Shown here piece after piece: positions 11,021-46,506 of a stretch of 64,000 bases of DNA. The notes below the pieces were generated by a model that was not told the origin of the DNA, did no database searches, and saw nothing but the letters and a program-made list of their open reading frames with translations. The position numbers were made by a program, and so were the translations under genes. Where the stretch lies: positions 164,287-228,286 of the IMG/VR virus record IMGVR_UViG_3300032242_002041; one strand, given 5' to 3'. Each line of letters opens with the position of its first letter. Positions within the stretch are counted from its first letter, which is position 1.

Positions 11021-11051
11021 TGTATAACCTAGATTAATTAACAATACTAGT

Positions 11052-26304: not shown

Positions 26305-26943
26305 CTACTTACCGTCGACATGGAGCTGGCTACCATTATTGAAGCTGGGGCTAAATGGACTTTGTGCTACACGCCCGCCTTTGGATTGTGACCATGCATA
26401 GCCGGCACGATGTCCTGAACAGTCTTTGGTGCAAGGGCTACCAAGGAAGCTGAGTTCGTTTAATTCATCTTTGAGCCAGGTATCAGCAAAGGCTTTGCAC
26501 AATGCTTGAATTTTTTTATTTCGAGTAATTTCTAAATGATATGTTTTATTACCGGCTTTGGTTTGTTGACTAGGATCTCTATAGCCAGCATAGACTTTAT
26601 GTACCGGTGTACTACTGATCAAATCTCGACAGCTAGAACCCGCACGTTCAGGCATGGGTTCGGTGCAAGGACTACAGGTAGTCAGGATGATACTGCCATT
26701 GGGTATGTCGCCAAAACGGTCATGATACGCATCAATAGCCGCTCGTTCAGCGTGAACATCACCTGATTCGATCCAGTAGTTCAGTGCTGCCACACAGTTG
26801 TTGTTACGATCCAGCACCGCGGCTGCACACATCATGTAAGCATCGGGATCTCGACGCTGTCCGTCAATTACCAACTCACAAAGACGTACCAGGATTTCAT
26901 CTAGTTGCTTTCTATCATGTATTTGAAAATCACTTATGCGCAT
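26305..26943 (-). CDS. zinc-dependent deaminase-like protein plus C-terminal Cys peptide
   Basis: HAE...SPC..C deaminase motifs; MRISDF leader; LNE boundary before PCTKDCSGHRAGY. Confidence 0.75.
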   Translation of the reverse strand: MRISDFQIHDRKQLDEILVRLCELVIDGQRRDPDAYMMCAAAVLDRNNNCVAALNYWIESGDVHAERAAIDAYHDRFGDIPNGSIILTTCSPCTEPMPERAGSSCRDLISSTPVHKVYAGYRDPSQQTKAGNKTYHLEITRNKKIQALCKAFADTWLKDELNELSFLGSPCTKDCSGHRAGYAWSQSKGGRVAQSPFSPSFNNGSQLHVDGK

Positions 26944-27655
26944 CTTTAATCCAGTCGTCGGGAACTACACCGTGTTTTTCAACAAACAGCTCGTGCAGTT
27001 TTTTTGGAGTAATTTTGTATTTTTTGGCTATAGACTTCATCATGTGATCTATAGCATCGTAGCTGTAGGGATGGCGAAGATCTTTTTCAAGATCATCAAC
27101 ACTGCCTTCTTTTAATGGAATAACCTTGACATCTTTATCATACCGTTTCCAAGGTGTAAAGTTTTTGTTAGTTCTAATCGTATCAAAGTCAGCAACATAT
27201 ACACCGCCTGACTTGTTCCAGTCAGCACCGCCAACAAATTTCATGGACACACGGTCTCCTAACTTGTGCATGTCAGGGATTTGTATAGCCACATTCATAA
27301 CAAAGTTTTTATTGTTAGTTAAATCAGCATAACGGCTAGCTAGTTCGTTAGGAATATCAATAGTAACTGTATAGTTTTGTCGTAAGAAGTGCTGGGCCAA
27401 TTGCCTATATCTCTTTAATACCTGCGCCTGATTACTACTGTGATTTAACGCATAGGTAACTTCTAAATAAATGTGACGGCATTTGAATTGTTCGGCTATA
27501 GATTGAATGGTGTCAATGTCTTTGAACTGGTTGACAATCAAAGTTTTTTTGCCGTAGGCAGCAGTCCTCTCAACTTCAGGACCGATGATATAATCGGGTC
27601 TATTGCCGGTTGGATGCACATTTTTTGTGCTGGTAGTAAAGTCACTGGCTCTCAT
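26930..27655 (-). CDS. putative virion internal protein carrying a paralogue of 16927..17442
   Basis: MRASDF leader; GPEVERTAAYGKKTLIV..HIYL..GVY..FTPWKRYDKD; LKE boundary. Confidence 0.7.
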   Translation of the reverse strand: MRASDFTTSTKNVHPTGNRPDYIIGPEVERTAAYGKKTLIVNQFKDIDTIQSIAEQFKCRHIYLEVTYALNHSSNQAQVLKRYRQLAQHFLRQNYTVTIDIPNELASRYADLTNNKNFVMNVAIQIPDMHKLGDRVSMKFVGGADWNKSGGVYVADFDTIRTNKNFTPWKRYDKDVKVIPLKEGSVDDLEKDLRHPYSYDAIDHMMKSIAKKYKITPKKLHELFVEKHGVVPDDWIKDAHK

Positions 27656-30600
27656 TCAACACCAAGGATCTGTTGAACCTGATTGACATAAGCACTAACA
27701 TCACTGGTGCCAATTTCGTCTACGTCACCTACATTGTATGCCACTTCCTCAATGGCCTGTGTGACTTTATCTAGCCCAAATTCCATTATCAAATCAGTGT
27801 GCGCCACTAGGATACGCCTGATAATGGCGATCTCAACGGCTTCGCTACTGGTTGAATTTTCGTCCTCGACCAAGTCTTGTTCAAGTCGATTGATCAGTTT
27901 GGAAACTGTTGTTTCAAAGGACTGTATGCTGGGTTTACCCAATCGAGCCTGCTCAATGGCAGCTTCTTCGCTATCGCCACGTCGTGTGATGCTGACCATT
28001 CGAGTTTGAGGATTGTAATAGACCACATAGCCGCGGATCACACTTTTCTGTGGAATAGTAGTACCGGGCATTTCAAATTCTTCTGTGACTTTGTCCTCAA
28101 ATGGCAAATACCAGAACCAGTTTTGGAAACCACCTGGGTTGGTATCATAGTCCATATGCGCACGATTACGAGCACCAGCCATCATACGTTTGAACTCATT
28201 TTCTGCGCCATGTAGTTCAGCAATGTTTTCTAGCTCGTCGTACAGTTGACCAGCAAGAAAACTGTCCCTGTGACGTTCAATTTTAGGAGCCAGGCGGCGA
28301 TAAACTCTAGCCATTTCTGCTCGAACATCTGTAACAGTTTCGGCTACGCCTTGCTTGCGCTCGTAGTCACGAATGATGTCAGCCCGCATATTAGGATTAC
28401 GTTCAATAGCCCGTAGCACTGCCTCGGGATAACGTGCAGGTTGTTTTGCTTTAACTGCTATGTGAGCATCTGGCATGTCATTCCATTCACCATCATCATA
28501 ATCATCACTTTCGTTCTTGGGTTTGACATGATGTTTTTTCATGTTGATTGCAATAGCAGCCTGCTGTGCGGCATTGGCGGCTTCCTCAAAGTCATCTCGA
28601 GGATTCATGACAACCGAACGAGATTGAGGTTGATTAACTGATTTTGCTGTCGGAGATTGATTAATGGTTTGAGCTTGTGAGCCGGCCGCATTTCTATGAC
28701 CAATTGCACCAATAATACTATTAACATCATTACTGCCCTGCATACCGGCTGTATTTTGTAATATTTTCCATACCGCTTGTTTATTACTTGCGTTACCTAG
28801 TGCTGACATTAAATCATTTTGATTTTGAATTTTACCAGACTGAATTTGTTGTATAACAGCGGTAGGATTGACTACACTAGGACCACTGCTTTGTGCCTGA
28901 GCCGCACCGGCGCCGCCCAAGGCCATGGCACCTGCTAGGGCTGCACCACCTAATGCTGATTTCCAGCCTTCATCCAGATCAATATCAGCCGGAGCAACCC
29001 ATACTGTATCGTGAGTCCATTTTGTTGGATCTTTCTTGCGCATGGCGGCCACATAGGCTTCAGCTTCTCTAGTATTCATGGGTTTGCCAATCTTATTTGT
29101 GGATTTGATACGCTTGACTTGACCGTTTTGTTTGGTATACACCGCATAGTGGTCACGTAGTCCTGCGGCCCCACTTCCACCCCAATTGCCTTCCTTGACT
29201 GGTGTGTCTTGTTGAGGTGCTGGTTTTAGCAGTGTGCGATACTGTTGTTGAAATGCCGCTTTGCTCATACCATATGCAGTATAAAACTGGCGCTCATTCA
29301 TATGTTCTACGTCTTGACGCATGATATCTATATCACTCAAACTGTCGCTTTCATCTAACTCGTCGTACCAATCATCTTCTTCTTGTTTGTCAGCATACTG
29401 GTTGTATTCAACATCACTCAGGTGCATGCTGTGTTTACCGTGATTGTACAAGTCGACAATAACAAATGTTCCACTTGGACTGAGTTCATAGATCTCGCCA
29501 GTCTTGCCTTCAAATTCGTTGGGTGCTGTAACAATGATAGGATCACCCGGGTGTAATCGGTTAGCAGATTCGTCAATGTTTAATAAATCAAATTCATCTT
29601 CTGGATTAGGAACTGGTAGTGTCTGAGATTTAATCTGAGGAGCGGCAGGCTTGGCCTTAGGTTTAGATTTGGATTTGGAAGGTGCAACATCTAAATCACT
29701 AAACGGAGCCTGCACACGCGGAGTCTGTTGTTTTTTGGTCGTGGTCAAATTATCCTGATCTATGTTTAATGCCTGTGCGGCCTGTGCCGGCAGTGAGTTT
29801 ATTTGAGTTCGTAATTTTGCTATTTCGGCCTTGACATTATCTGATGGTGGCTGTTGTTGTAATTGATTAATTTGCATTTTAAGATCTTGTAGTTCTTTTT
29901 CAACTCCTGGATCTGCACCAGGCGCAATGATTGTTGTGGGCTCTGGGGTTATTGTCTGTGGTGTTGTCTTGGCTGCTTGTTTAGGACGTGTGGACTGTTT
30001 TGCTCCAGTCATTGATTGGATGGTGTTTTGTAAACGATCGTTAGTAGCTTGTATGCGAGCTAACTGAGCTTCAAGACTATTATTTTCAGAATCTAACCCG
30101 TCAATCTCACGCCCTTGCTCTTGGTCAAGTGATACTAATTTTTTTAAGAGTTCGTCTTGTTTAGTGTTAGCACCCTGAATAGCAGCCAACTGTTGATCAC
30201 TACGTTTTTGATGGTCCAATTCATCTTTGGCCAAAGCTGCCATAGCATTAGGAGCTGCAGGGTGCTTGGCTTGTATTTTTCTTACAGCGTTGGTGGTTTC
30301 GGCGTCGCCAAAGTTTGGATCTTCAGAATTTTTTTTTTGAGCTCGTTCTGAGACTGGGCTTATCTTAGGTTCAGCATACCCTGTCAATTTGGGCTGGAAA
30401 GGATCTGCGGGTTGTTTTAACTGTGGACGAGTGGTTACTTTTTTCTGCCCACCTAACCATAAGGCAAAATTATTACGATCAGCTAATGTTTGTAGTGCAA
30501 ATTGATTACGAGTTTGGCGGCTCATATTTTTTAATTTTAATAAAGTATGATATATTTGATTACGTGACATAGTAATTGGTTCAGGACTGTTCATCCAGCG

Positions 30601-31137
30601 GATAGTTGCAATATCAACATTGTCGTCATGTGCTTTACGCATTTGTTCGTAGGCATATTTGGCAGCAGCTACAGGAGAAATTGCGGCTGTTTGTTCTTTA
30701 ACTGTGGACTCGTATGTAGGACCAGTGTCGTCTCGACCTGCTAACCAATCAACAAAACTAGAAAAAGTCGATTTAGCTTTTCCTAACGCAGTATTGCTTG
30801 GAGGAGTAGCACCGGTTACACGTTGTTGCGGAGTAACTAAATCTGTACCAGCACGAACAGGTTGGGCGGGTGCTGGAACTTGGTCAGCTTCACCTAAGCT
30901 ACCATAGCCCATGCACTCATCTTTAATCTTGTAATAGCCGTCGCGCTCAGTTTTGCACTTTTGAAATTCTTTAACCAATGCCGCCTTAGATTCTGGAGTA
31001 GTAGCTGTTTTAGCACGAGCAACCAAGTCATCCATCTTCATAGCTAAATCGTCAATGCGACGTTGTTCTAATTGGTCAACAGCACCTTCTGCAAGGCGTC
31101 GTTCGTGATCTGTGTTAAATAGGTCTAATGCAAACAT
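27652..31137 (-). CDS. large modular putative internal virion polyprotein
   Basis: Many short modules between LxE/VxE/GVAE sites; coiled coil; KOW-like segment; internal hydrophobic helix. Confidence 0.75.
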   Translation of the reverse strand: MFALDLFNTDHERRLAEGAVDQLEQRRIDDLAMKMDDLVARAKTATTPESKAALVKEFQKCKTERDGYYKIKDECMGYGSLGEADQVPAPAQPVRAGTDLVTPQQRVTGATPPSNTALGKAKSTFSSFVDWLAGRDDTGPTYESTVKEQTAAISPVAAAKYAYEQMRKAHDDNVDIATIRWMNSPEPITMSRNQIYHTLLKLKNMSRQTRNQFALQTLADRNNFALWLGGQKKVTTRPQLKQPADPFQPKLTGYAEPKISPVSERAQKKNSEDPNFGDAETTNAVRKIQAKHPAAPNAMAALAKDELDHQKRSDQQLAAIQGANTKQDELLKKLVSLDQEQGREIDGLDSENNSLEAQLARIQATNDRLQNTIQSMTGAKQSTRPKQAAKTTPQTITPEPTTIIAPGADPGVEKELQDLKMQINQLQQQPPSDNVKAEIAKLRTQINSLPAQAAQALNIDQDNLTTTKKQQTPRVQAPFSDLDVAPSKSKSKPKAKPAAPQIKSQTLPVPNPEDEFDLLNIDESANRLHPGDPIIVTAPNEFEGKTGEIYELSPSGTFVIVDLYNHGKHSMHLSDVEYNQYADKQEEDDWYDELDESDSLSDIDIMRQDVEHMNERQFYTAYGMSKAAFQQQYRTLLKPAPQQDTPVKEGNWGGSGAAGLRDHYAVYTKQNGQVKRIKSTNKIGKPMNTREAEAYVAAMRKKDPTKWTHDTVWVAPADIDLDEGWKSALGGAALAGAMALGGAGAAQAQSSGPSVVNPTAVIQQIQSGKIQNQNDLMSALGNASNKQAVWKILQNTAGMQGSNDVNSIIGAIGHRNAAGSQAQTINQSPTAKSVNQPQSRSVVMNPRDDFEEAANAAQQAAIAINMKKHHVKPKNESDDYDDGEWNDMPDAHIAVKAKQPARYPEAVLRAIERNPNMRADIIRDYERKQGVAETVTDVRAEMARVYRRLAPKIERHRDSFLAGQLYDELENIAELHGAENEFKRMMAGARNRAHMDYDTNPGGFQNWFWYLPFEDKVTEEFEMPGTTIPQKSVIRGYVVYYNPQTRMVSITRRGDSEEAAIEQARLGKPSIQSFETTVSKLINRLEQDLVEDENSTSSEAVEIAIIRRILVAHTDLIMEFGLDKVTQAIEEVAYNVGDVDEIGTSDVSAYVNQVQQILGVE

Positions 31138-31147
31138 TTATTTTTCC

Positions 31148-31960
31148 TTAAGCTTCGTCTATGTAATCTTGTGCTTCGTTGTGCTTACGTTGACGATGTG
31201 CAAACATTTCAATGGCCATTTCGGCCTCATCTAACGTTTTAAAACGTGTAGGCAAGCTACGGCCGGATCGACGAATTTCAAAACCATTATGCTCATTGCC
31301 GTGCATTTCCCAAAGTCCACATTCGTTAGTGATAGTTTTAACTGGACTATCTTCCTTGATGCTAACTCCGGGTTCTCCAGCAGGTTGTTCTGCGGGAATA
31401 ACACCGCTTAAGTCCGTACCAAGTTCTGACTCGTTGGCTATTAAATCTCGATCTTGTTTATCTTTTGATTTTAAATCGCCATCTTCGTGTTTTTTATCTT
31501 TAAGATCTGAATCTTTAATTTCTTGTTCAGCTTGTTTAATAAAATCTGTAAACGAACGTTTAACCTTGTCCAGGACATCCTCGCTAGTAATAGCTTCTGC
31601 TAAGTCCTGATTATGATAATTATCCCAGAACTCTTCCGGATCATCAAAGTAACGACTATATTCGTCATAGAACTCATCATAGTCCATTACTTGTGCATCG
31701 GCAATTAAGTCTTGTAATAGCGCAGGGTCTTTAATACCATGCCATGGTTCTTCATCATGTTCAACACTTTCTTCGCAGCCGCCAACCAACTTGCCTGCCA
31801 TTGGATTCTTGGGATCTTGTTTGGCAGTGAGTACTGCCACTGTCTTGGGTTTAAAAGTTGCGCCAAGTTGATTGACGCTTTTTTGATTCGCGTTTAGACC
31901 TTCTTCCAACATACGAAGACGTTCTACAATAGTATAGATATCGTTATGGTCTTGTGCCAC
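31148..31960 (-). CDS. acidic putative head-associated protein
   Basis: Glu-rich, with LEE/LAE/IKE sites. Confidence 0.65.
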   Translation of the reverse strand: MAQDHNDIYTIVERLRMLEEGLNANQKSVNQLGATFKPKTVAVLTAKQDPKNPMAGKLVGGCEESVEHDEEPWHGIKDPALLQDLIADAQVMDYDEFYDEYSRYFDDPEEFWDNYHNQDLAEAITSEDVLDKVKRSFTDFIKQAEQEIKDSDLKDKKHEDGDLKSKDKQDRDLIANESELGTDLSGVIPAEQPAGEPGVSIKEDSPVKTITNECGLWEMHGNEHNGFEIRRSGRSLPTRFKTLDEAEMAIEMFAHRQRKHNEAQDYIDEA

Positions 31961-31963
31961 AGA

Positions 31964-32404
31964 TCATGCCCTTGCTTCTTTTAAACTAGAACGTAATTGC
32001 CAAGCAAACTTATTGGTTTGACTTAAACGTTCAGCAATAAAATTTGCTATGTCTTGTTTGTTTTCTTTGGTGGCAGCTGCAAAACATTGGTTTAATAACC
32101 CAACCATCTCTTCGCTATTGGCCAACAATTCTTCAATCATTAATCGGGCACGGGGCACTTTGAGTTGCCCGGGGATTACGCTTAGTTCTAGGAAACGTTC
32201 CATACTACCTGGGGAATATTCTTGTAGACTGCGAATGTATTCGGCTGTGGGATCTATGGCACTATAGGCATCTTCATAGATCTTTTGGAAAAACTTATGA
32301 TATTGATAAAAGTCTGGCGATTCAATATTCCAGTGGAAAGCATGTGCTTTTACATAATAGGCAAATTGAGTTCCTAACAAGGTTTTTAACAAATCAGCTA
32401 ACAT
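31964..32404 (-). CDS. dps: Dps/ferritin-like DNA starvation protection protein
   Basis: HAFHWNI..PDFYQYH..F..IYE, D..AEYIR, K.AWQL. Confidence 0.88.
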   Translation of the reverse strand: MLADLLKTLLGTQFAYYVKAHAFHWNIESPDFYQYHKFFQKIYEDAYSAIDPTAEYIRSLQEYSPGSMERFLELSVIPGQLKVPRARLMIEELLANSEEMVGLLNQCFAAATKENKQDIANFIAERLSQTNKFAWQLRSSLKEARA

Positions 32405-32613
32405 TACTTTTTCCGTTTATATTTCTTGTACTCTGCAGGCGTATTGGGCGTTGCATCGTCAGTAGTGTATTTAGTGCCAGAAAAGAAATGGCCACCATTT
32501 CTACTAATCATGCCACCTAAGGGCATGGCTACAGGGGCTATACTGCCTGCGCAAGTAGATCCACTACTTGCGCCACTGTCTTCTCGTAAGTCAACAAATT
32601 CGTGCAATCTCAT
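32404..32613 (-). CDS. small putative internal virion protein
   Basis: MRLHEFVDLRE leader, basic C-terminus. Confidence 0.65.
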   Translation of the reverse strand: MRLHEFVDLREDSGASSGSTCAGSIAPVAMPLGGMISRNGGHFFSGTKYTTDDATPNTPAEYKKYKRKK

Positions 32614-32894
32614 TCTGCAATCCTTAATACGTTATTTTCTACGGTTCCAGGGCCAAAATCTACACGGATATTTTGTACTTGCAACTGAGCTAAATGCGGT
32701 GGAACTAATTCCCAACGTAACCGATACTCTCCGGGCTCTGCTTCAATCTGTAGCATTTCTTCAAGATATTCTGTGGTCCAATACCAGGTACGCTCGGCAA
32801 ACAATTCGTCATTGACGTACACGCGATAGATAGGATTTAACCCTTCCCAGTCGCAGTCTACATCGGCTAACACACGTACAAAATGTTTATTCAT
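32610..32894 (-). CDS. hypothetical beta-rich protein
   Basis: TAAATA directly upstream (32899-32904). Confidence 0.65.
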   Translation of the reverse strand: MNKHFVRVLADVDCDWEGLNPIYRVYVNDELFAERTWYWTTEYLEEMLQIEAEPGEYRLRWELVPPHLAQLQVQNIRVDFGPGTVENNVLRIAE

Positions 32895-32919
32895 AGTGTA
32901 TTTAGCGTAATTTAAACTG

Positions 32920-33654
32920 TTATATTGATAGATATCTTATAATCAAAACGCCAGGCTGAGCCGATAATCGATTACAATAGTTAGACTCGGCTAGATCGTA
33001 GCCGCCGCCAGCGCCATAGCTGGTATATCCTGTGCCATTAAGGCCAATACCGCCTGGGCCCTTGCCACTGCCGCCGCCGGCATAATAAACCATGTTACCA
33101 GTGATATCACTAGGTATACCTACACCACCACGTCCGCCAACTCCATCTAGAGTGCCCTGTCCGCCAGAGCCAGCAGCGCCACCCCCGCCACCTGGACCAA
33201 ACGGTGGATATCCACCACCAGCTGGAGCACCGCCGGCATAGCCTTGTCCGGGTATGCCAGCACCGCCTACAAAGTTTTGAAAATTGATATGTGTGACACC
33301 CAAGGTTCCGCCACCGCCGCCGGATCCACCACTAAAGCCATTGCCATAAAATCCACCCTGCCCGCCACCGTTGGCTGTCATGTTTAAGAAACTGCTGTTG
33401 TTGCCCGGATCACCAACAATTACTGGATATGATCCTGTGTTAATTGTAACGTTGCCTGTGAGTACTCCACCTGCACCACCACCGGCTACATAGGTACTCT
33501 GTGGCAGAGCTGCATTGCCGCCGCCGGCTACAAGCAAGTATTGGACGTCTGCAAGTGTACCACCCGACACAGTTAAACTACCATTGGCCTCAAAGGTTAC
33601 GACAGTATAATCACCGTCGGTGGTGACTGTACCAGTGGATGTTACCACGGTCAT
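32920..33654 (-). CDS. glycine-rich structural protein (tail/fibre-associated type)
   Basis: YLLVAGGG, GGGAGG repeats, GVLIIRY terminus. Confidence 0.75.
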   Translation of the reverse strand: MTVVTSTGTVTTDGDYTVVTFEANGSLTVSGGTLADVQYLLVAGGGNAALPQSTYVAGGGAGGVLTGNVTINTGSYPVIVGDPGNNSSFLNMTANGGGQGGFYGNGFSGGSGGGGGTLGVTHINFQNFVGGAGIPGQGYAGGAPAGGGYPPFGPGGGGGAAGSGGQGTLDGVGGRGGVGIPSDITGNMVYYAGGGSGKGPGGIGLNGTGYTSYGAGGGYDLAESNYCNRLSAQPGVLIIRYLSI

Positions 33655-33863
33655 CGAACTTCCTTTACACTGCCAATATGCCAGAGTGGCACACCATACT
33701 GTGCTTGCATTAGTTGACGGGCCAGTTGTGCGTTGGGCGCAGTCACAGTTACATCAATATAGCCTACATAATTAGGTTGAGTAATCTTAACCGGCGCTGT
33801 CCATAGCTTGGCAGCCACGGCTGTGTTTTGTTTTACGGCTTCCGATATTTCGTAGAATCTCAT
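33651..33863 (-). CDS. small putative internal virion protein
   Basis: MRFYEISE leader; ATGA overlap with the upstream stop. Confidence 0.6.
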   Translation of the reverse strand: MRFYEISEAVKQNTAVAAKLWTAPVKITQPNYVGYIDVTVTAPNAQLARQLMQAQYGVPLWHIGSVKEVR

Positions 33864-34693
33864 TGTCCTGTCCACTTGGCTATCATAGTTGCTTGACTGG
33901 TATAAATGCCAGTGCCTCTTCGTCCGCTACGCATACTACTGCTACCAGGTTTTACTGGAAATGTATATCTAGTCCAATCCGCCGTTTGATCAACGACCTG
34001 GTCACCGCGTTGTGGCCGGTATTCATCAGTGGGCGTCATGTTGTAACCTAGGACTTCAACTCCTGGAATACTATTTAACATTAGCCACATCTGTTGTCCG
34101 TGACGGGTTTGTGTTTCGCCAGCTTCTACTGTGAGCTTTAATATGCTTAAGGCAATGCCATACAAGGCTTTGCCAAGCCCCTGTCCACGAAAATCAGGAT
34201 CAACCACTACAGTATCAACTTTCCAAGTTTTCATGTAGTCCTGAGTATAATACAAATCCATTTCGGCAGCTAATATTTGGCCATCAAAGATCATAATTTC
34301 TATATTTTCAGCATCGGGTTGATTAACAGCATAGTCAAACTTACTACCGCCTGGCAGGGGTTTTGTTTTGGGCGGAGTTTTAGGATCGGCCAAGGTGCCT
34401 TTTTTGCCCCAGTCACCTAGTTCACTTTTTGGCAAGCGGGCTATCTCAAATAATTCTGGATCAAAGTCATCAGCACTGATAAAATGTGTAGTGCCATCAC
34501 GATGTTGTAGTTGCACAGCATCATCCTCTGATTCAACTTGATGTATGCTCCAACCAAGACTGTTTAGTACATGTTCAATCTGTGGTTGTCGGTCCGTGGC
34601 GTTCCACCAACGATTGGCCAGAACAAAAATAGGATCTGGAACATCATCATTGTTGTCACGCTCAGGACTGGGAGCAAATTCTCTTAATCTCAT
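33860..34693 (-). CDS. GNAT acetyltransferase-domain protein
   Basis: VVVDPDFRGQGLGKALY acetyl-CoA motif; MRLREF leader; LFE boundary. Confidence 0.8.
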   Translation of the reverse strand: MRLREFAPSPERDNNDDVPDPIFVLANRWWNATDRQPQIEHVLNSLGWSIHQVESEDDAVQLQHRDGTTHFISADDFDPELFEIARLPKSELGDWGKKGTLADPKTPPKTKPLPGGSKFDYAVNQPDAENIEIMIFDGQILAAEMDLYYTQDYMKTWKVDTVVVDPDFRGQGLGKALYGIALSILKLTVEAGETQTRHGQQMWLMLNSIPGVEVLGYNMTPTDEYRPQRGDQVVDQTADWTRYTFPVKPGSSSMRSGRRGTGIYTSQATMIAKWTGQ

Positions 34694-35169
34694 AGGTATC
34701 CTACCCAGGCTGGTCCTGCGTATCCTTGTGGAAATGCCTTTAATGCTTGTGTGGTTCTATGTCCACCTTCAACCAACGCATAGCCGTCGGGCATTTTTAT
34801 AACAATGATGGGTTCTCCACTGACCCCTTGTTGTTGTATCTTGGCGGCTTGTGCGGCATGCCGTTCGGCATCTCTGGGCACCTGATTGGGATTTTTAGAG
34901 CCGCCTTCTCTTTTACGAATTTGTTCCTGTGTAGCAGGTGTAAAGATGTCCATGGTAATAGGCAATTTTTCTAAACGCCATTGCCGGATTGGATATTCCT
35001 GTAACAAATGCTGTATGTGGGCTTTTTTATCTTCAAGTTCCATGTTATCAGGAATACGACCATACAACCAATCTTTGACCACATAGTCAGGCCAGTGTTT
35101 AGGCACCATGCTGCGTATTAAACGCCATGCTCCGCCTTGATATTCAAACAAAAATTCTTCAGCTCTCAT
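34690..35169 (-). CDS. ParB/Srx-like domain protein
   Basis: EPIIV...YALVEGGHRT; MRAEEFLFE leader. Confidence 0.7.
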   Translation of the reverse strand: MRAEEFLFEYQGGAWRLIRSMVPKHWPDYVVKDWLYGRIPDNMELEDKKAHIQHLLQEYPIRQWRLEKLPITMDIFTPATQEQIRKREGGSKNPNQVPRDAERHAAQAAKIQQQGVSGEPIIVIKMPDGYALVEGGHRTTQALKAFPQGYAGPAWVGYL

Positions 35170-36249
35170 TTAGCAGTTCCAACGACGGCGTGCCTTGCAG
35201 ATAGCTTTGTCAGGAGTTTTTGCACAGCTAATATTGTGCATCTTCATTTGACCACGACTGCGTGAGCAGTAGCTCTTGCGACGCTTGCTGGCTTTGCTAC
35301 CTTTTTTGAGCTTGGAAGGTTTAGTAGTCACAGCAGTTTGTAGTTTGCTACCAGGATGCTCACGGCGATATGTTTTGACGGCTTTCTTACTCATGCCATC
35401 TGTGCGGTCTCGATTGTTGACCTTCTGCCAGGCTTCGGTTTCCATAATAGTTGTTGTGGTTGCAAACACATACAGTTCATCATCGTCCAAGCTCTCTAGG
35501 TCTTCCCAGATCACTTCGCTATCTACGCCATTACGCTCAGCAAGAGTTTCAATAATGTTTTCGATTAAGTCAAATTCTTCAGCCAGTTCTGTGTCTTCCG
35601 CCACACCTTGCTGTCTTTGGACAGGGCTGTCTCTAAGTGCATCTCGATAAAACTCTTTGAAATCTTGTGCCAATTCTCTTGCTGACCACGCCCAAGTTTG
35701 ACGGTCCCAATCGTCTGTCATCTCAGCTTCAAGTTTAGCACCTGGTGCTCGACCACGACTAAACCCTATACGAACAGTATGTTCAATTTGTTTATTAACC
35801 AACTTTGCAAATAGTTTGCCATTGGGATTTGGATTAATTGTTACTTTATATCCGTGTCGTTCGGCAAACTGTATCGTTGGCTGTAAGAACTGGATTTTAG
35901 GATCAACAACACCAGCTTGAGGCGGAACAGCTTCCGCCACACTCTCGTTAGGCACACAGTTACGCACCTGGCCGCCATTCCGGCCTTTCTTTGTACCTTC
36001 GGCATGTTTGCCAGGCCAGCAACGAGTATAGCCATTGGCATCTTTAGCACCCTTCTTGATTTCATTGAGATTGCCATGTGTTTGACACATGCCACAGTCT
36101 TCACAGACCATTTCCATTTCTGTGCTTTCATTGTGCTTTTTCTTACCAGCACAATGAGCTCGTTGCGAGAAGCCCTTGGGGTGGCTACAGTTGATACTGC
36201 TCTTGTATTTTTGACTCCACTTTTCAGTGATAAATTCATAGGCTTTCAT
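35170..36249 (-). CDS. putative internal virion polyprotein of basic Cys-containing peptides
   Basis: MKAYEFITE leader; Lys/Cys-rich modules between xxE sites. Confidence 0.75.
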   Translation of the reverse strand: MKAYEFITEKWSQKYKSSINCSHPKGFSQRAHCAGKKKHNESTEMEMVCEDCGMCQTHGNLNEIKKGAKDANGYTRCWPGKHAEGTKKGRNGGQVRNCVPNESVAEAVPPQAGVVDPKIQFLQPTIQFAERHGYKVTINPNPNGKLFAKLVNKQIEHTVRIGFSRGRAPGAKLEAEMTDDWDRQTWAWSARELAQDFKEFYRDALRDSPVQRQQGVAEDTELAEEFDLIENIIETLAERNGVDSEVIWEDLESLDDDELYVFATTTTIMETEAWQKVNNRDRTDGMSKKAVKTYRREHPGSKLQTAVTTKPSKLKKGSKASKRRKSYCSRSRGQMKMHNISCAKTPDKAICKARRRWNC

Positions 36250-39200
36250 TCTTTGTGTTTCCTTTTCTGTCCTCTACGCATATTTAACTGCCAACGTGCC
36301 AGTTGTCCTTTACGACCTTTGGCATGACTCGCTTTTTCTAATTCAGCCATTGTAGCACCTTTGGGGATGCCGTGACGAACGCTATCGCCTGGACGACCAG
36401 GTCCTTTGCCGTCGGCAAAATTTTCTTGTAATCCTCTGACTGACATATTGTGTCCAGTGCTACGTTCTAGTTCGTTGGCACGAGCATCAGCCTGCGACCA
36501 AGGCACGTTATCCATTCTGCTGATCTCGCGTCCTAAGGTAACATCGTATATTGCCCAAGTGCCTACTCTATTGGTAGCATCCGCGGGTTGGTCAAAGTTC
36601 TGTGCCACATCTGGCTCAACATCCTTGACTGCTGTTTCTTGCTTGCGTGGTCTATAACCATAGTCGTGAGTGTCGTTTGGCAAACCCTTCATTGTCAGCC
36701 ATTTATCAAACGTTGCATCTGCTTCTTGTTTGTCAGCGGCATAGAACCGGTCCACTACACGTAGATTTACATCGCCAAGATTTACAATTTCGTAGTTGTA
36801 GTCTGTGGGCTTTTTGGTTTGAGTAATGCGCTTGGCTAACTTGGCACGTGGTGTCATAGTTGCTGGATCTTCCCAAGGGCGAACCTGGAAGCCAATGCCT
36901 TGATCCACATACTTGTCGTAGACCTGATCAGCCACTTCGCCTTTGCTCTTGCCCTTGACTATTTCCAGCGTCTTGCCAGTGTTGACATCATACACTTCCC
37001 AGTCTTGCTCACCCATGTTGACCAGCTGATATTCACCAGAGTCCAAGGCTTCACGACCATACTTGGCCCATACTCGGTTTTTAACTTCACTTTCGGGGTA
37101 ACCATTCCACTCGGCACCAGGAACTGGTTCCCACCGACCGTTGACGTTTTGATACAGTCTAAAACGCTGATTCATTTTCTTTTCTTTACCGATGGTCTTT
37201 TCGGCCCATTGTTTCTTGAGTTGTTCTGCGGTGAGTTCACCCGCGGCATATTGACTGAACAGAGCTAGTTCACTGTCGCCTTCGGGCGCTACTAACTTGT
37301 ACAACTTCTTGGCATACTCTCTGCGTTCTTCAGCAGGGTTAGCCGCCAAACTCATAGCACGGGCAAAACGCAACATGGTTGTTTGTAATTTTTCCGGATC
37401 AGCTGACTCTTCTGCTAACCAATCACCACCTGGCGATCTAAATTCAATATAGCCTTTTTGTATGTGGGCACTGGTGTACTTGCCATCGCCTACCCCTTTT
37501 TGTATTTCTTTGTGTGCTAGTTCAATCAAGCCACTCTGCATGAGTTTGATCGCACCCATAGGATCAGCACGACCGCCTTTGATGTTTTCACGGAACTTGC
37601 TCATGGCACTCTTGGTGTAGGTATTGGCTTCGCGACCAAATGACCGTAACACATACTCGTCACCCAAGAACAGGATTAATTTCAAGTAGTCAACATCGCC
37701 ACCTTTGAATGGCACACTAACGCCCATGTGCAGGCCAGTTGAGCTGTTGGTATAGGCATTACCTTCTTGAGGATTATTGGCCCAGTCACATACTTGTTGT
37801 AGTTTTTCTAATGCTGTCAACAGGGGCATAGGAGGACTTACAATTTCCAACCCAAAATCTTCACGATCATCGGGTTCTAAACTGGTATCAGGTTCTACAA
37901 TAAACTGTCCTTCTCGGCGAGTAGCTTGGTGATAACCGCTACTTACTTTAACCGGCATGTCAACGGCACTGTTCAAACTGTCACCAATTTCATCCCAATC
38001 ACGACTTCCGTCATTGCCACCGCCACCGGTCATGTAAGGCCAGTCTAAGTCATATGAATTGGCCACATCACTCATCCAGCGTAGACCCACATCATCAAAG
38101 AATCCTGAATCGTCATCAATTTGATAATTGTCGCGGAAATCATCCAGTGCGGCATCCCAGTTGGCACCTTCCTTACGTACTTCATCTGCTATTAAATCAT
38201 CCAACAAGCCTTCGGCTTCGTTTTGTGCATCCAGGTATTTGTCGTAAAGTGGGTTGGCTTCAGCATACAAGATCTGTTCTTTACTGCTTGTGAACTTAGG
38301 TGCCCGTTCGCCCGCTTGTATAATGTCATTCATTTCATCGTCGGTTAAATCCAACAACTCCAACTGTTTTTGTATTTCGTTGTCAAGATCCCAATCGCCT
38401 TCATCTACTAGAACTTTACGAATCAAGTCCTCGGCTTCTTCTCTAAAGTCTTTGTGCATTTGCTCGTCATACCACTCATAATACTGTTCGTCAAGTCCTT
38501 CTTGTAAGGCACGCTCTTGTCTAGGACTTAAATTTCCGTAGTCGCCACCACTAAAAAAGTCTATGATATCTTGGATGCTACGACAACGTTCGTCCTGATC
38601 ATAGTCAGGTTCCATTTCGTAGTCACTGTCGCCGTTGTTGCTGGTGTCACGGAAGATTAACTCTGCTTCAAACCCAGCACGTATACCCTGGGCTTCTGGA
38701 CTCCGTGCCCACTGCATTAGATTGCTTGGACTCATACGTACTTCGTCTAGTTGCTCAACTGATTCGGCTACCTTTGTTTTTTTGAACTGTGATAATTCTA
38801 AGGCTAATTTTTCAAACAGGCCATTAGGATTAGCAATCTGCGGTTGTCCTTGACTGTTGGTTTTTAATTTTAATTTGTTAGCTTCTTTGCCAACTTGACC
38901 TGGCTTGATATCTTGTGTAAGCGCCATTGAATAGCGTGGATCTCGGGCCTGTTTCCGTGTAGGGATGTATCCCGATGCTGACTCCTCTACACCTTGCTTG
39001 GCACGTTGCTTGGCACGTTTGGCACGTTGTAAGTAGTATTTTTTTAATTCTAAATCTTTTGGTGTAGCAGTTCTGATCAGATCTAAATGTTGATCCACTG
39101 GAACTTTTTCAACTTCTATTGGTTTAAGTTCGGTTACGCTGGGCACGGAAGTAAACTCTCTGTCATTGCCGCCGGGCTCAAACAAAGGACGACCATTGGC

Positions 39201-40652
39201 ATCATACCTTGGTAACTTGTGTAGGTAAACCATTTGACCGTGTCTAATTTTGCCGCTGAATAAAACCAATTGCGGATCATTGGGAAATCCAGCAGTATCA
39301 GACCCTCGTTCTGTAAGGCCCATTGCTATAGCAAAATTTTTGTCGGCTGTGGCATAAATGGCTTTTTTATTACTCTTAGGATTGCCGCCGGTGTCTTCTG
39401 CCTGTTGTGGCGTCAGTACTGGAATCTCGTTTCTAGATCCGTGCCATAGATATTCTTGTGACGCACTTTCTTTAACTTCATCAGCGTGTAAGCCTTGGGC
39501 TTGCCCTACAGCAAAGTAGTCCGGGTGTAGTCTAGCATAGTCGCGCATTAAGATACCAGCACGGGCATTGGCTTCATTTTCCCATGGTGATCCTGTTTCT
39601 CCAGCTGTTGGTCCCATACGTTGACCATCGCGTTCGTGTTGATGCTTGTGTGTAAGTTCGTGTGCCACAGTGCGCAACACATCCATGATGTGACGATGGC
39701 CCCAGGCTACTTCAAGCAAGTGTTGATTGTTGATGTAACGGCCAAAAGTTTTGTTACGCACAGACCATTCAGGATCTTTGCGTAATTTAATTGTGGGCAT
39801 CTGCTTGAGTTTTAATTCTTTAAAACAAAAGTCAATAAAATCTTTTAGTATCTCTTCGTCTGAGGGAACAGGGTCTGGTTCCGTTACGGCTTCAACTATC
39901 TCTGGAGTTCGAAATCCATACTTTACAGGAGTCTTAACTACAGTTTTTTCTTTTAAACTGAGTTCCTGATCTTTGGCTGCGTTACGAGCATCATATAATT
40001 CTTTAATCTTGCCTTGACTACGTAACATTTTAAATGCCAAATTTTCTGGTCCAAATTCGCCGTGTTGTTCAAGTCCAGTTTGGCGCATCTTTTTAATCTT
40101 TTCAGCCATACAGGTCATCTGTTTTAAGTTGCCTGATTTGATAGCACGTTCAATTTGGTGCCCTACTGACTCAAATTTGTTTCGAGTGCTGGTATCGTCT
40201 ACCACTGACTTGACACGACGCGGAACTTGAATCCAGTCATTGTTTAAGATACTGTAAATGCCTTGACTAATATGCGGAGCATCGGCATCTTGAACATATA
40301 GTTCAACATCGTATCCACCAATTGTAATATTGTGTTGTTCGTTATACTGAAACTTTTTAGCATCAAACAGTTCACGATAAACTTCGTTATCGGGCATTTT
40401 AACTACTAGGTGTAGATCGATGTCTGAATTGGGTGTGTATGTGTAAGCGGCATTGCTACCACTAATAGTTATGTCTTTGAGGTCAAGGTCTGTAACGCCC
40501 AGAAACTCGCGAAAATCTTCAGCTATTAACAATAGCTGTGCTTTAACTTCTGGCTTTAAATGCTCAGTAGAATCCCATAATCTAGGATTTAATCGATTAT
40601 TAAATTTGACGGCATCGTCAAGGTTATAGGCGTCTAATTCAAGAATATTCAT
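36246..40652 (-). CDS. multi-enzyme polyprotein: Pol-beta nucleotidyltransferase + HExxH metallopeptidase + ADP-ribosyltransferase-like + amidoligase
   Basis: GSNAAY..SDIDLH; AHELTH..WENEA; WHGS..IYAT..E; GFEAE..DTSL..EIVSP..TGLHM..IEFR; start 40652 just after TAAATA. Confidence 0.8.
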   Translation of the reverse strand: MNILELDAYNLDDAVKFNNRLNPRLWDSTEHLKPEVKAQLLLIAEDFREFLGVTDLDLKDITISGSNAAYTYTPNSDIDLHLVVKMPDNEVYRELFDAKKFQYNEQHNITIGGYDVELYVQDADAPHISQGIYSILNNDWIQVPRRVKSVVDDTSTRNKFESVGHQIERAIKSGNLKQMTCMAEKIKKMRQTGLEQHGEFGPENLAFKMLRSQGKIKELYDARNAAKDQELSLKEKTVVKTPVKYGFRTPEIVEAVTEPDPVPSDEEILKDFIDFCFKELKLKQMPTIKLRKDPEWSVRNKTFGRYINNQHLLEVAWGHRHIMDVLRTVAHELTHKHQHERDGQRMGPTAGETGSPWENEANARAGILMRDYARLHPDYFAVGQAQGLHADEVKESASQEYLWHGSRNEIPVLTPQQAEDTGGNPKSNKKAIYATADKNFAIAMGLTERGSDTAGFPNDPQLVLFSGKIRHGQMVYLHKLPRYDANGRPLFEPGGNDREFTSVPSVTELKPIEVEKVPVDQHLDLIRTATPKDLELKKYYLQRAKRAKQRAKQGVEESASGYIPTRKQARDPRYSMALTQDIKPGQVGKEANKLKLKTNSQGQPQIANPNGLFEKLALELSQFKKTKVAESVEQLDEVRMSPSNLMQWARSPEAQGIRAGFEAELIFRDTSNNGDSDYEMEPDYDQDERCRSIQDIIDFFSGGDYGNLSPRQERALQEGLDEQYYEWYDEQMHKDFREEAEDLIRKVLVDEGDWDLDNEIQKQLELLDLTDDEMNDIIQAGERAPKFTSSKEQILYAEANPLYDKYLDAQNEAEGLLDDLIADEVRKEGANWDAALDDFRDNYQIDDDSGFFDDVGLRWMSDVANSYDLDWPYMTGGGGNDGSRDWDEIGDSLNSAVDMPVKVSSGYHQATRREGQFIVEPDTSLEPDDREDFGLEIVSPPMPLLTALEKLQQVCDWANNPQEGNAYTNSSTGLHMGVSVPFKGGDVDYLKLILFLGDEYVLRSFGREANTYTKSAMSKFRENIKGGRADPMGAIKLMQSGLIELAHKEIQKGVGDGKYTSAHIQKGYIEFRSPGGDWLAEESADPEKLQTTMLRFARAMSLAANPAEERREYAKKLYKLVAPEGDSELALFSQYAAGELTAEQLKKQWAEKTIGKEKKMNQRFRLYQNVNGRWEPVPGAEWNGYPESEVKNRVWAKYGREALDSGEYQLVNMGEQDWEVYDVNTGKTLEIVKGKSKGEVADQVYDKYVDQGIGFQVRPWEDPATMTPRAKLAKRITQTKKPTDYNYEIVNLGDVNLRVVDRFYAADKQEADATFDKWLTMKGLPNDTHDYGYRPRKQETAVKDVEPDVAQNFDQPADATNRVGTWAIYDVTLGREISRMDNVPWSQADARANELERSTGHNMSVRGLQENFADGKGPGRPGDSVRHGIPKGATMAELEKASHAKGRKGQLARWQLNMRRGQKRKHKE

Positions 40653-40669
40653 GATAGTATTTACCGGGC

Positions 40670-40696
40670 AAACAAAAGCCGCTTTGATAGCGGCTT
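40670..40696 (-). terminator. rho-independent terminator
   Basis: AAGCCGCT/AGCGGCTT stem followed by a U-rich tract on the minus strand. Confidence 0.7.
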
Positions 40697-40718
40697 GTGT
40701 CATTTAAACAAAAACAGT

Positions 40719-41621
40719 TTATTTTTTCTTTTTCTTGCTGGATGATGCCAGTACTTTAGCTTCAACCGGCTTGGGTGCTACATCAACAGGTGCAGCAACA
40801 CCTGTAGGACCACCTAGTGCTACATTATTGTTTAATGCCAGAGTATGCAGATCTTTGTAGAGTTGATCTTGTGTTTGAAAGTCAAATACATAGGTTCCTG
40901 TGTGCTTGAGTAGGACACGCTTGTCAACCCACACTTTACCTCCTAGATCACGCCAGTTTTCACAGAAAGTCCAGTCTTCGCTATAGTAGCGGTTCTCACG
41001 AACTGCTGTATCAAAGTAGGTTTTCATAAACGGATTTAATTCAGGCGGCAGGCCAATGTCATTTAAAAACGGCTTGGTAGCAGGATGAGCATTGAGTTTT
41101 TCAAATACATCACGTTTGATCAACATAAATCCTGTGCCAGTTTTGCTAACTTCTTGCAGACCATCTGGGCCTTCTTCGGCTCCTTCAAAACCATTGACAC
41201 ACCACTTGACTGGCAGGCTTTTCATTGGGTATAAACCACCAATAACGTCCACGTCACGATTTAACATGACCAGCAGGTGCCATGGCTCCCAACCAATGTC
41301 AGCATCAATAAACATCAGGTGTGTGGATTCTTTGTTGTACAGGAACTTGGCTGTGAGTGTGTTACGAGCACGGCTAATCAATGACTCATTGGTCATGGTT
41401 TCCATGGTCCAATCAATGCCCAATTGACGGCAAGTATTGGCCCATTTGATATAGCTCATAAAACAACTTTCTGTTAGCATACCACCATAGCAGGGCATAC
41501 AAATATGAACTCGAGTAGTTTTTAAATAATCAACGTTAACTTGAATTTGTTGTTGTCCTGGCTGTAGGGCCGGCGCTTGTGGTGTTTCTGTTGTTGGTAC
41601 TGCGTCTTTGGTTTCAGCCAT
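40719..41621 (-). CDS. GT-A fold glycosyltransferase-like protein
   Basis: PCYGG, ESLISRARN, THLMFIDADI, GTGFMLIKR, SEDWTFC. Confidence 0.75.
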   Translation of the reverse strand: MAETKDAVPTTETPQAPALQPGQQQIQVNVDYLKTTRVHICMPCYGGMLTESCFMSYIKWANTCRQLGIDWTMETMTNESLISRARNTLTAKFLYNKESTHLMFIDADIGWEPWHLLVMLNRDVDVIGGLYPMKSLPVKWCVNGFEGAEEGPDGLQEVSKTGTGFMLIKRDVFEKLNAHPATKPFLNDIGLPPELNPFMKTYFDTAVRENRYYSEDWTFCENWRDLGGKVWVDKRVLLKHTGTYVFDFQTQDQLYKDLHTLALNNNVALGGPTGVAAPVDVAPKPVEAKVLASSSKKKKK

Positions 41622-41671: not shown

Positions 41672-42484
41672 TTATTTTTTCCTAGGCCTACATTCGTCAA
41701 TATAGTCTTGACTGTCACGTAAAATTTGAATTTGTTCTCGCAGATATTGGATATTTTTTTGTAATTTTGCCATACGATTTTCGCGCATAACTGTCACAGG
41801 TTGATCACCGGCAAATACCTTTTCCTGCCCATAAATTACAGCATCTTGAGGCTCATTAACACCCAAACGTTGATCAAAAATATCTTTTAATTCTGGATCT
41901 GGAGCACCATACAAATCAGTAATGATTTGATTACGATCGTTTTCATTGCCATCAACATACATTTTTCTCACAGTGCTGGCAGAATCTGCATCTTGACCCA
42001 GGACTTTAAATGGAATAGTATCCACAACATCTACATAGGCTGTGCCATCGGAAATAGGCTTGCAATCTTTTAAATTTTTAGGCAGGGGTTGTGGGTTAGC
42101 TGGACTTCCGTCCCGCTTGGGAGCAAAGCTAAATCTAGGACGTTGAATAACTTTGCCATCAGCATCTTTAATTAACTGTTGATCTTTTGCTCCCACAGCA
42201 AAAATTAATACAGTATTTTCTGGATCTGGAATATTGGTATATTCTGTAATATGATAAGGATTAACTACTTTGACAATGTCGCTGGCCGGAACGCCCATTT
42301 TGGTTAACATGGTAACTTTGTCACTGTAGCTAAATGGACTGCTTGCTCCGTCTTGTTTTTCAGTTGTAGCAATTTTGACACGCCCGCCCAGTGGAGTGTA
42401 TTTCTTGACAAGATAGTCATAAACACCTTTATGACCTCGGTGGAATAGATGGAATCTGCCTGGATATATTACAAGATAGTTCAT
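41672..42484 (-). CDS. cytidylyltransferase/HxGH nucleotidyltransferase-like protein
   Basis: PGRFHLFHRGH, SPF, SASTVR. Confidence 0.7.
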   Translation of the reverse strand: MNYLVIYPGRFHLFHRGHKGVYDYLVKKYTPLGGRVKIATTEKQDGASSPFSYSDKVTMLTKMGVPASDIVKVVNPYHITEYTNIPDPENTVLIFAVGAKDQQLIKDADGKVIQRPRFSFAPKRDGSPANPQPLPKNLKDCKPISDGTAYVDVVDTIPFKVLGQDADSASTVRKMYVDGNENDRNQIITDLYGAPDPELKDIFDQRLGVNEPQDAVIYGQEKVFAGDQPVTVMRENRMAKLQKNIQYLREQIQILRDSQDYIDECRPRKK

Positions 42485-46430: not shown

Positions 46431-46464
46431 GAATACCTTTTTATGTAAATGTGGCCTATGCTAC

Positions 46465-46493
46465 ATTATACTATATAGTGAATTAAAAATCAA
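46465..46493 (-). promoter_or_regulatory. sigma70-like promoter of clpA
   Basis: TTGATT-17-TATAAT. Confidence 0.6.
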
Positions 46494-46506
46494 TCTATAT
46501 GGATAG

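Follow-up and report, generated by a model that had tools for sequence, protein, structure and literature searches.

Leader-Bearing Modular Proteins with Hydrophobic-x-Glu Linkers in a Freshwater T4-Like Jumbo Phage: A Candidate Capsid-Targeted Polyprotein Locus

The subject of this paper is a 14-kb locus (positions 26305–40652) in a 64,000-nucleotide stretch of viral DNA, hereafter the window, which is the last 64 kb of the 228-kb IMG/VR contig IMGVR_UViG_3300032242_002041 (contig coordinate = window coordinate + 164,286) and carries all of the genes of interest on its minus strand. A sequence-only reading of this DNA had proposed that the locus encodes polyproteins that short leaders send to the phage head, where they are cut after glutamate, and that the products are delivered with the DNA for host takeover or antidefense. 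We have followed up that proposal by comparison with relatives, for which we used 84 related IMG/VR loci fetched through protein homology and holding 2003 distinct open reading frames (ORFs). In other words, what do these genes share, and what could the sharing be for?

The family-B DNA polymerase of the window (21060–23717) shares 50% identity with its counterpart in Sinorhizobium phage Phosso and 46% with the one in Agrobacterium phage Atu_ph07, and because of these identities, we assign the window to “group 2.2” of the T4-superfamily jumbo phages (Iyer et al. 2021, PMC7824862); gp20 and gp21 are present in all Group 2 jumbo phages (PMC7824862). The locus belongs to a freshwater T4-superfamily jumbo phage, with genomes of ∼330–355 kb. 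Among 50,697 GenBank phage records, megablast gave no DNA-level match to the locus, and tblastn with its 1161-aa protein was likewise without a match; no tRNAs were found.

Genes with a Common Beginning

Seven genes of the locus begin alike, and each of the N termini to which the sequence-only reading had drawn attention is a true gene start in the ORF translations: MRISDF at 26943, MRASDF at 27655, MRLHEFVDLRE at 32613, MRFYEISE at 33863, MRLREF at 34693, MRAEEFLFE at 35169, and MKAYEFITE at 36249. When ORFs of 40 aa or longer in all six frames of the window were scanned for M[RK]xx[DE][FIL], the pattern turned up nine times, twice at internal methionines and seven times at these starts, which all lie within 26.3–36.3 kb; none of the ∼60 other window ORFs has the leader, the chance rate of which we estimate, from residue frequencies, at ∼0.4% per ORF. 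In the relatives, the leader opens 208 of the 2003 ORFs, and the 196 distinct N termini among them give the logo M-[RK]-[AIL]-x-[ED]-[FI]-[ILV]-[TIV]-E, in which position 9 is E in 126 and position 7 is I, L, or V in 151, although the search pattern had left both positions free. The consensus of these leaders reads M-[KR]-[AI]-N-E-F-[IV]-T-E. In the window, five of the seven leaders carry an E at positions 8–11. Third-codon positions of the leader vary among relatives, so selection acts at the level of the peptide, and what follows the leader differs from protein to protein with no relation. There is also a second, looser class of leader, M-x-φ-x-[DENQ]-φ-φ-[ED] (φ, hydrophobic; e.g., MNFKELFEG and MFVDDLFDQ), which starts many linker-bearing proteins and to which both of the giant window proteins belong (MNILELD and MFALDLFNT).

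The T4 capsid-targeting sequence (CTS) is MKTYQEFIAE (PMC8442874); its residues 4 and 7 target, its residues 8 and 10 direct processing, and gp21 cleaves after L/I-x-E (PMC9026906). When the leader is set beside the CTS and other T4 starts (gp24, MAKINELLRE; gp22, MLKEQLIAE), the comparison supports the view that it is a portable nine-residue N-terminal tag ending in hydrophobic-x-E and resembling the T4 CTS and the gp24 propeptide. T4-like cyanophages, too, have CTS-like starts (MKKLDQFLTE, MISFDQFLSE, MKLFNQFFKE, and MKTLKQFLKE), which are found on a Ser/Thr kinase, a cytidylyltransferase, and small proteins in Synechococcus phage S-CRM01 (g127, g129, and g130; locus L229), S-SM2 (SSM2_108/109; L107), and S-SCSM2R_175/176 (L108).

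The largest gene behind a leader (36246–40652) encodes a 1468-aa polyprotein with Pfam matches to NTP_transf_2 and Amidoligase_2. The ORF as called (36246–40703; 1485 aa) was corrected from its orthologs to the ATG at 40652, which is where the sequence-only reading had ended the locus. Its modules, known from Pfam, ortholog alignment, and AlphaFold2 (AF2), run from a nucleotidyltransferase, an HExxH metallopeptidase-like module, a 160-aa insert (for which a protein-atlas search gave only a weak DUF6886 lead), and a small basic module to an amidoligase-containing block, four small repeats, and a basic tail beginning NFADG. The 359-aa protein that starts MKAYEFITE (35170–36249) consists of small Cys/Lys-rich modules, one cargo module (aa 107–213), an EEFDLIE module, and a DUF6321 C terminus, as seen from Pfam, homolog breakpoints, and AF2. 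The third multimodule protein (27652–31137; 1161 aa) starts MFALDLFNT, contains a coiled-coil/low-complexity region and an internal signal-like segment, and ends ...ILGVE before its stop.

The other leader proteins are smaller. They are a ParB/sulfiredoxin-like protein of 159 aa (MRAEEFLFE; 34690–35169), a GNAT acetyltransferase-like protein of 277 aa (MRLREF; 33860–34693) whose relatives of 364–699 aa keep both termini and vary in the middle, proteins of 70 aa (MRFYEISE; 33651–33863), 69 aa (MRLHEFVDLRE; 32404–32613), and 241 aa (MRASDF; 26930–27655), and a cytidine/dCMP deaminase-like protein of 212 aa (MRISDF; 26305–26943; PF00383, E 3.9e-8). Pfam and PHROGs were run on whole proteins and on ten cut pieces, and the matches were limited to nucleotidyltransferase, amidoligase, deaminase, GNAT, ferritin, and DUF6321. 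The “dozens of enzymes and peptides” of the sequence-only reading seem plausible by this count, which comes to perhaps 20–25 modules and seven single proteins.

Linkers between Modules

The second claim of the sequence-only reading was that recognizable domains begin and end at short motifs of the type φ-x-E or QGV(A/E)E. The motifs are there (LKE, VKE, QGVEE, KVAE, and LQE in the 1468-aa protein; LNE, ESVAE, and QGVAE in the 359-aa protein; LDE and QGVAE in the 1161-aa protein), and they coincide with breakpoints of homology to relatives. In the 1468-aa protein, SLKE/K (39945–39959; the slash marks the boundary) follows the nucleotidyltransferase domain as defined by AF2 and homology, EVKE/S (39465–39479) is the upstream edge of an inserted module in the ortholog alignment, and a QGVEE linker (38982–38996), followed by SASGYIPT, is its downstream edge; KVAE/S (38760–38774) is an insertion hot spot in orthologs, and GLQE/N (36420–36434) precedes the NFADG tail. 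When module order is compared among relatives, the gains and losses of modules in orthologs of this protein are confined to fixed hot spots, and these are φ-x-E sites. The suggestion that the linkers serve as joints for shuffling is, to that extent, borne out.

Is this more than one would expect by chance? The ends of BLAST segments fall exactly on [ILVM]xE in 10.5% of cases compared with 2.0% for random positions. Looking instead at what precedes a recurrent module, E stands there in 42 of 43 distinct contexts for the NFADG tail, 51 of 51 for KWSQKYK, 10 of 10 for ASGYIPT, and 27 of 32 for DUF6321 (130 of 136 in total), mostly with V, I, L, or M two residues earlier. The same module can sit behind an N-terminal leader or an internal linker (e.g., MRINELFE/NFADG), and the ASGYIPT module is found behind VEE, IAE, LEE, LGE, VSE, QYE, or TNE in seven otherwise unrelated contexts. 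The 359-aa protein has >600 matches in IMG/VR, and the partial ones have their breakpoints at residues 106 and 218, where ESVAE and QGVAE end; in its family, with variants of 74–645 aa, the constant parts are the leader, the C-terminal DUF6321, and several small Cys/Lys-rich modules, between which lie zero to four unrelated cargo modules, one relative having four QGVAEG linkers. Cyanophages also have the small Cys/Lys-rich modules and DUF6321, in S-SM2 on a gene between gp16 and gp17.

Structure prediction also bears on the question of whether domain boundaries coincide with the motifs. The AF2 model of the 1468-aa protein has domains at 22–231 and 262–380, with low-confidence gaps that begin at LKE and near VKE, and in the 359-aa protein, low-confidence stretches cover LNE, ESVAE, QGVAE, and IMETE; that is, the low-confidence segments are where the linkers are, but the models are poor (predicted local distance difference test, pLDDT, of 52 and 59), and that of the 1468-aa protein, made from eight sequences and scoring 52, was too poor for a fold search. 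Taken with the comparisons among relatives, these results support a modular grammar in which modules appear to begin and end at hydrophobic-x-E or QGVAE.

A Joint Conserved as DNA

One linker stands apart from the rest. Among 2269 ORFs, QGVAE has the greatest diversity of contexts of any pentapeptide that is not low-complexity, and in 35 of its 55 distinct contexts, it is encoded by the same exact 15-mer, CAAGGTGTGGCGGAA. Within QGVAE, Ala is GCG in 83% of cases vs. a background of 7%, and Val is GTG in 75% vs. 25%; G-VAE occurs in 91 contexts and G-VAD, G-VAK, and G-VAG in only one or two, whereas tripeptides other than G-VAE show ordinary codon use. The conserved core is a 12-mer, GGTGTGGCGGAA, and its flanks are unrelated even inside a single ORF. 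Among the matches listed, an exact 16-mer is present in >120 IMG/VR stretches, often as two to four copies 150–600 nt apart, and 168 of 171 instances read in frame as QGVAE; the terminases of the phages that carry it are just 60–76% identical to each other. At each site, linkers outnumber modules by one, so that n modules come with n + 1 linkers and an empty site keeps a single one.

The window has an exact copy of the 15-mer in the QGVAE linker of the 359-aa protein (35596–35610), whose ESVAE linker (35932–35946) contains the core GTGGCGGAA, and a copy with three synonymous differences, peptide kept, in the 1161-aa protein (28339–28353). The latter belongs to a minority of linkers that keep the peptide with other codons, so constraints act at both the peptide level and the DNA level. 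A QGVAE that is fixed as DNA between unrelated flanks in divergent phages points to an in-frame recombination joint, and our reading is that the linkers would be crossover points of module exchange, homogenized by the exchange itself. Neither a recombinase nor an attC-like structure was found, no systematic recombinase search having been made. We also considered a role at the RNA level or as a Chi-like site (an internal Shine–Dalgarno sequence or GTG start, a hairpin, a Chi sequence) and, on inspection, found no support for it; the spacing does not suit initiation, the 16-mer is not self-complementary, and, with just two copies of the core in the window, no genome-wide strand bias is seen.

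Internal Signals and the Head Protease

Some modules begin with what looks like an export signal. Tat signals (RRGFLKGLGA...) are found directly after leaders and, in six distinct internal contexts, deep inside proteins directly after linkers (e.g., NESEELDE/ID-RRGFL and NESVAE/ADMS-RRGFL), and a signal- or transmembrane (TM)-like segment, GWKxxLGGAALAGAMALGG..A(Q/H)A, is found in approximately twenty distinct internal contexts, always right after φ-x-E. The window example is IDLDE/GWKSALGGAALAGAMALGGAGAAQA (28891–28983; aa 724–749 of the 1161-aa protein), a signal-peptide or TM-like segment that follows L-D-E. Because such segments need a free N terminus to work, their presence implies cleavage at the linkers. 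There is a precedent in SPN3US gp47, which is ejected and which, once matured by the protease, has a TM segment at its N terminus (PMC5694885). Three genes of the locus, moreover, end ...GVE, ...IAE, and ...HKE right before the stop.

If there is cleavage, which protease would do it? The sequence-only reading looked to a gp21-like prohead protease, which turned up in the relatives and not in the window, where no head genes are found. Homologs of T4 gp21, gp20, and gp23 are present in linker-carrying loci (e.g., the gp21 homolog at 4794–5417 of related locus L150), and when a linker-locus gp21 was used as the query, a homolog 88% identical to it came up on contig 3300023184_000024 (352 kb). The syntenic leader protein is encoded on that contig as well, as are gp20 and gp23, so the phage group of the window probably has a T4-type head. 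The relatives’ gp21-type protease begins MALYLRE/N, echoing LIE-9 of T4, and the propeptide of their major capsid protein has four conserved φ-x-E motifs. Terminase or sheath genes are adjacent in ∼19 of the relatives’ loci. We rejected, as a general rule, the idea that head modules always include a polyprotein gene, since only 3 of 29 have one. In each of the three, a GIY-YIG-type homing-endonuclease-like ORF separates the capsid gene from the polyprotein gene with its linkers (L150, 7843–8589; L127, 3214–3984; L178, 1419–2165), and this position suggests that the insertion beside the capsid gene arrived as a mobile unit.

Late-Type Motifs

The late promoter of T4 is TATAAATA. This full consensus is not enriched in the window, where 3 copies compare with an expected 4.9, and the locus has none; a shorter TAAATA, which the sequence-only reading had called a promoter at two places, fares better. 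It is present 5 nt before the ATG at 40652 (40658–40663) and 4 nt before the ATG at 32894 (32899–32904), and in relatives, it is invariant at 4–7 nt before the ATG between variable flanks. In the window, 11 of the 26 coding-strand copies lie 4–27 nt upstream of an ORF start (12 with the corrected start, for 40663), compared with an expectation of 0.96 and a maximum of five in 1000 trials, and the ORFs behind them include the holin and GH19 lysis genes. Because the shorter motif is conserved in relatives and tied to gene starts, we uphold the promoter claim despite the null result for TATAAATA; the pattern fits a relaxed T4 late promoter and so, probably, late-type expression. Between the locus and the gene upstream is a hairpin like that of an intrinsic terminator (AGCCGCT-ATCAA-AGCGGCT and a T run; 40670–40695), which relatives conserve. 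The spacing between TAAATA and ATG falls into two classes, 4–8 nt without a Shine–Dalgarno sequence and 21–27 nt with one (e.g., 56849, 42497, 40663, 32904, 19351, and 7216), and if TAAATA is a −10 element, the short class would yield leaderless or near-leaderless late mRNAs.

Other Genes of the Locus and Window

Four genes of the locus are without the leader. They encode a 244-aa Gly-rich protein (phrog_2295; 32920–33654) whose membership in the system is uncertain, a 94-aa protein ending ...RIAE before its stop (32610–32894), which is the first gene after the TAAATA at 32899–32904, a 146-aa Dps/ferritin-like protein (31964–32404), and a 270-aa acidic protein ending QDYIDEA (31148–31960). The last of these ends (31151–31171, QDYIDEA-stop) has a counterpart in an otherwise unrelated protein, the product of 41672–42484 (QDYIDECRPRKK-stop), and relatives keep DY[IVM][DE]E there; QDYIDE may serve as a signal for processing or targeting at the C terminus, given that T4 Alt and gp21 undergo C-terminal cleavage as well.

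The gene at 41672–42484, which is cytidylyltransferase/NMNAT-like, precedes the 1468-aa gene together with a gene for a 300-aa protein with a poly-Lys C terminus (40719–41621). The pairing of cytidylyltransferase and nucleotidyltransferase is kept in S-CRM01 (g127 and g125), where the nucleotidyltransferase stands alone at 242 aa. Just upstream of the locus (44154–47298) are a ClpA/ClpB-like double-AAA+ chaperone (Clp_N, two AAA domains, and D2-small) and a full DnaJ, a pair that might unfold or refold large cargo proteins; the Clp-like gene holds the same position in close relatives. Beyond it are a three-TM holin-like gene and a putative GH19 (chitinase class I-like) endolysin gene (47701–48330 and 50066–50701), each with TAAATA 24–27 nt upstream and a Shine–Dalgarno-like sequence. 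On the other side, positions 1–25000 carry radical-SAM proteins (15429–16604 and 23802–24875), nucleotide-sugar epimerase-like proteins (5341–6381 and 12588–13538), and an 891-aa FG-GAP repeat protein (8369–11044), and the region may be a sugar or nucleotide-modification block.

Discussion

How might such proteins work? The account that we prefer, and to which we give somewhat better than an even chance, draws on the analogy with T4: these would be late cargo genes whose products are targeted to the prohead by their leaders, cut by gp21 at φ-x-E, packaged, and ejected with the DNA, the linkers doubling as crossover points. A class 1 leader (M-[KR]-x-x-[ED]-[FI]-[ILV]-x-E) or a class 2 leader would, like the T4 CTS, dock a protein onto the prohead core, and a gp21-type prohead protease would remove the leader after its terminal Glu. 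The same protease would cut the φ-x-E linkers (QGVAE/G, SVAE/A, LKE/K, VKE/S, LDE/G, and LQE/N), setting free enzymes (nucleotidyltransferase, metallopeptidase-like, amidoligase, GNAT, deaminase, and ParB-like) as well as small basic Cys-rich peptides and modules bearing signals or TM segments, and the cut products would remain in the head and exit with the DNA. Meanwhile, the stereotyped 12- to 16-nt QGVAE sequence would be an in-frame crossover, at which co-infecting relatives could insert, delete, or swap modules with the frame intact.

Several points stand against this account. Its cleavage and packaging steps are argued by analogy. The window is without head genes, the neighbors of the locus being replication/metabolic genes on one side and the ClpB-like/DnaJ/holin/GH19 block on the other; in relatives, no more than 3 of 29 head modules have a GVAE-bearing ORF beside the capsid gene; and the cyanophage leaders on the kinase and cytidylyltransferase sit in an early-looking region. 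Two window leaders (MRASDFTTST and MRLREFAPSPE) have no E at position 9, the AF2 models are of low quality, and cargo such as Dps, the deaminase, and the Tat-exported modules could equally act in the cell that produces it. Some of these points invite a different story, in which true polyproteins are cut at φ-x-E not by the prohead protease but by some other enzyme in the cytoplasm of the cell that makes them (the embedded HExxH module or a Glu-specific protease of host or phage), the leader is a tag for processing or stability, and the products act in the current infection, including by Tat/Sec export. The distance of the window locus from head genes and the scarcity of head-module linkage would then be no surprise, nor would leaders on the metabolic enzymes of cyanophages; an HExxH peptidase-like module does lie inside the 1468-aa protein, and Tat/Sec signals make most sense where export is ongoing. 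We nonetheless think this story rather unlikely because the leader matches the T4 CTS, gp24, and gp22 starts in length, hydrophobic positions, and terminal E, the grammar of the sites is the specificity of gp21, the capsid protein and protease of the lineage bear the same motifs, the promoter motif is of late type, and a dedicated cytoplasmic Glu-specific protease was not found.

Perhaps nothing is cut at all, and the proteins are intact multidomain “polyvalent” proteins in which φ-x-E is a spacer that persists as a recombination microhomology. Fixed codons in QGVAE are what a recombination joint predicts and what a protease site does not need, and injected multidomain proteins are known, some of them unprocessed (e.g., the N4 virion RNA polymerase, vRNAP; PMC5512222). 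Yet most boundaries are not QGVAE; they keep the last E and the hydrophobic residue two before it while codons and the middle residue vary, and a constraint of that kind acts on the peptide, as is usual for protease sites. Internal Tat/Sec-like signals would be useless in an uncut protein, leader ends and linker ends are interchangeable before the same module, and three genes stop right after their Glu-ending motifs, so that we regard the absence of cleavage as improbable. There remains composition, that is, xxE triplets that any Glu-rich protein would offer and M-R or M-K starts that come from overlapping genes. Here, it is true that φ-x-E is a short motif, frequent in Glu-rich proteins, and that ATGA stop-start overlaps are common in the locus and force the second codon to be AGA or AAA, so that part of the R/K preference in M[RK] has this source, which takes something away from our preferred account as well. 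The counts are what refute chance: no leader in the ∼60 other window ORFs, conservation at leader positions 7 and 9, which were not selected for, E before modules in 130 of 136 contexts, a fivefold enrichment at segment ends, and G-VAE in 91 contexts vs. one or two for its neighbors. An explanation by chance is hardly credible.

If the proteins are capsid-targeted cargo, as we prefer to think, their closest likeness is to the T4 internal proteins. IPI, IPII, IPIII, and Alt, like the locus proteins, have a leader of ∼10 residues with an aromatic/hydrophobic core and a hydrophobic-x-Glu end; in both cases, unrelated cargo follows one shared leader, a gp21-type protease is present in the lineage, and the promoter motif is late type. 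The internal protein loci of T-even phages are reportedly hypervariable too. The differences are, however, considerable. The locus leader is one residue shorter, there is no homology to the mature regions of the internal proteins, and there are seven or more cargo genes here (and 196 distinct leader N termini across the 84 loci first sampled); the internal proteins are cut once, whereas the locus cargo includes enzymes and multimodule polyproteins with internal sites and a linker conserved as DNA.

A second likeness is to the polyvalent proteins, large multidomain proteins of phages and conjugative elements that are predicted to enter the host with the DNA (Iyer, Burroughs, Anand, de Souza, and Aravind 2017; PMC5512222). 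Families characteristic of that class include MPTase-PolyVal, ART-PolyVal, and DarB-like ParB. The locus has domains of similar types (metallopeptidase-like, GNAT-like, ParB-like, and nucleotidyltransferase) and the same extensive mosaicism, and its 1468-, 1161-, and 359-aa proteins fall within the two to fifteen unrelated domains per phage polypeptide that mark the class; the PolyVal-specific Pfam models, in contrast, gave no match at E up to 1 to the whole proteins or the ten pieces that carry these HExxH, GNAT, ParB-like, and nucleotidyltransferase modules, and the window locus is not linked to portal, terminase, or MuF genes. The description of polyvalent proteins includes no shared N-terminal leader, Glu-ending boundary motif, or stereotyped linker, and the processing that it describes is autoproteolysis by embedded peptidases (PMC5512222). 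In the phiKZ-like giants (SPN3US, phiKZ, and 201phi2-1), ejection and inner-body proteins are also processed after Glu by the prohead protease, at a three-residue motif, (S/A/G)-x-E, often at several sites, and their propeptides act in targeting; these phages are a different group, however, with propeptides of >100 residues instead of 9–10 and no reported modular linker grammar or shuffling. One may think as well of viral polyproteins, integron cassettes, and shufflons, where one ORF gives several products or short repeated joints flank exchangeable units, but unlike the joints of cassettes and shufflons, those described here are part of the reading frame and would themselves code for the protease site.

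Was this, then, an undescribed system, as the sequence-only reading would have it? The concept is not new, given the CTS proteins of T4 and the polyvalent proteins; the leader–linker grammar, its spread in freshwater, and the joint conserved as DNA are parts that we have not found described, and our search for literature on QGVAE/GVAEG and DUF6321 found nothing on phages. We are tempted to go further and, more doubtfully than for the scheme above, suggest that (Q)GVAE could be a dual-code element, a prohead-protease site as peptide and a universal in-frame recombination adaptor as DNA (GGTGTGGCGGAA). Together with the leader, it would make an integron-like cassette system inside coding sequence, with which a family of freshwater T4-like jumbo phages could assemble, exchange, and deliver injected effectors, including modules readdressed to the periplasm by Tat/Sec signals that cleavage unmasks.

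What would follow if these ideas were right? The DNA-conserved joint would be a new case of one sequence encoding both a protease site and a recombination site and would explain how polyvalent proteins are assembled, and the leader, φ-x-E, and QGVAE rules would predict virion cargo and the ends of mature proteins from metagenomes. The T4 CTS has already been used as a packaging tag in phage engineering, and the leader and linker described here could serve as tags for packaging and release. The nucleotidyltransferase, amidoligase, deaminase, GNAT, and ParB-like modules would be candidate factors of counterdefense or host takeover. In these abundant, uncultured freshwater phages, capsid targeting of the T4 type would extend beyond three small internal proteins to a large and rapidly shuffled repertoire of enzymes.

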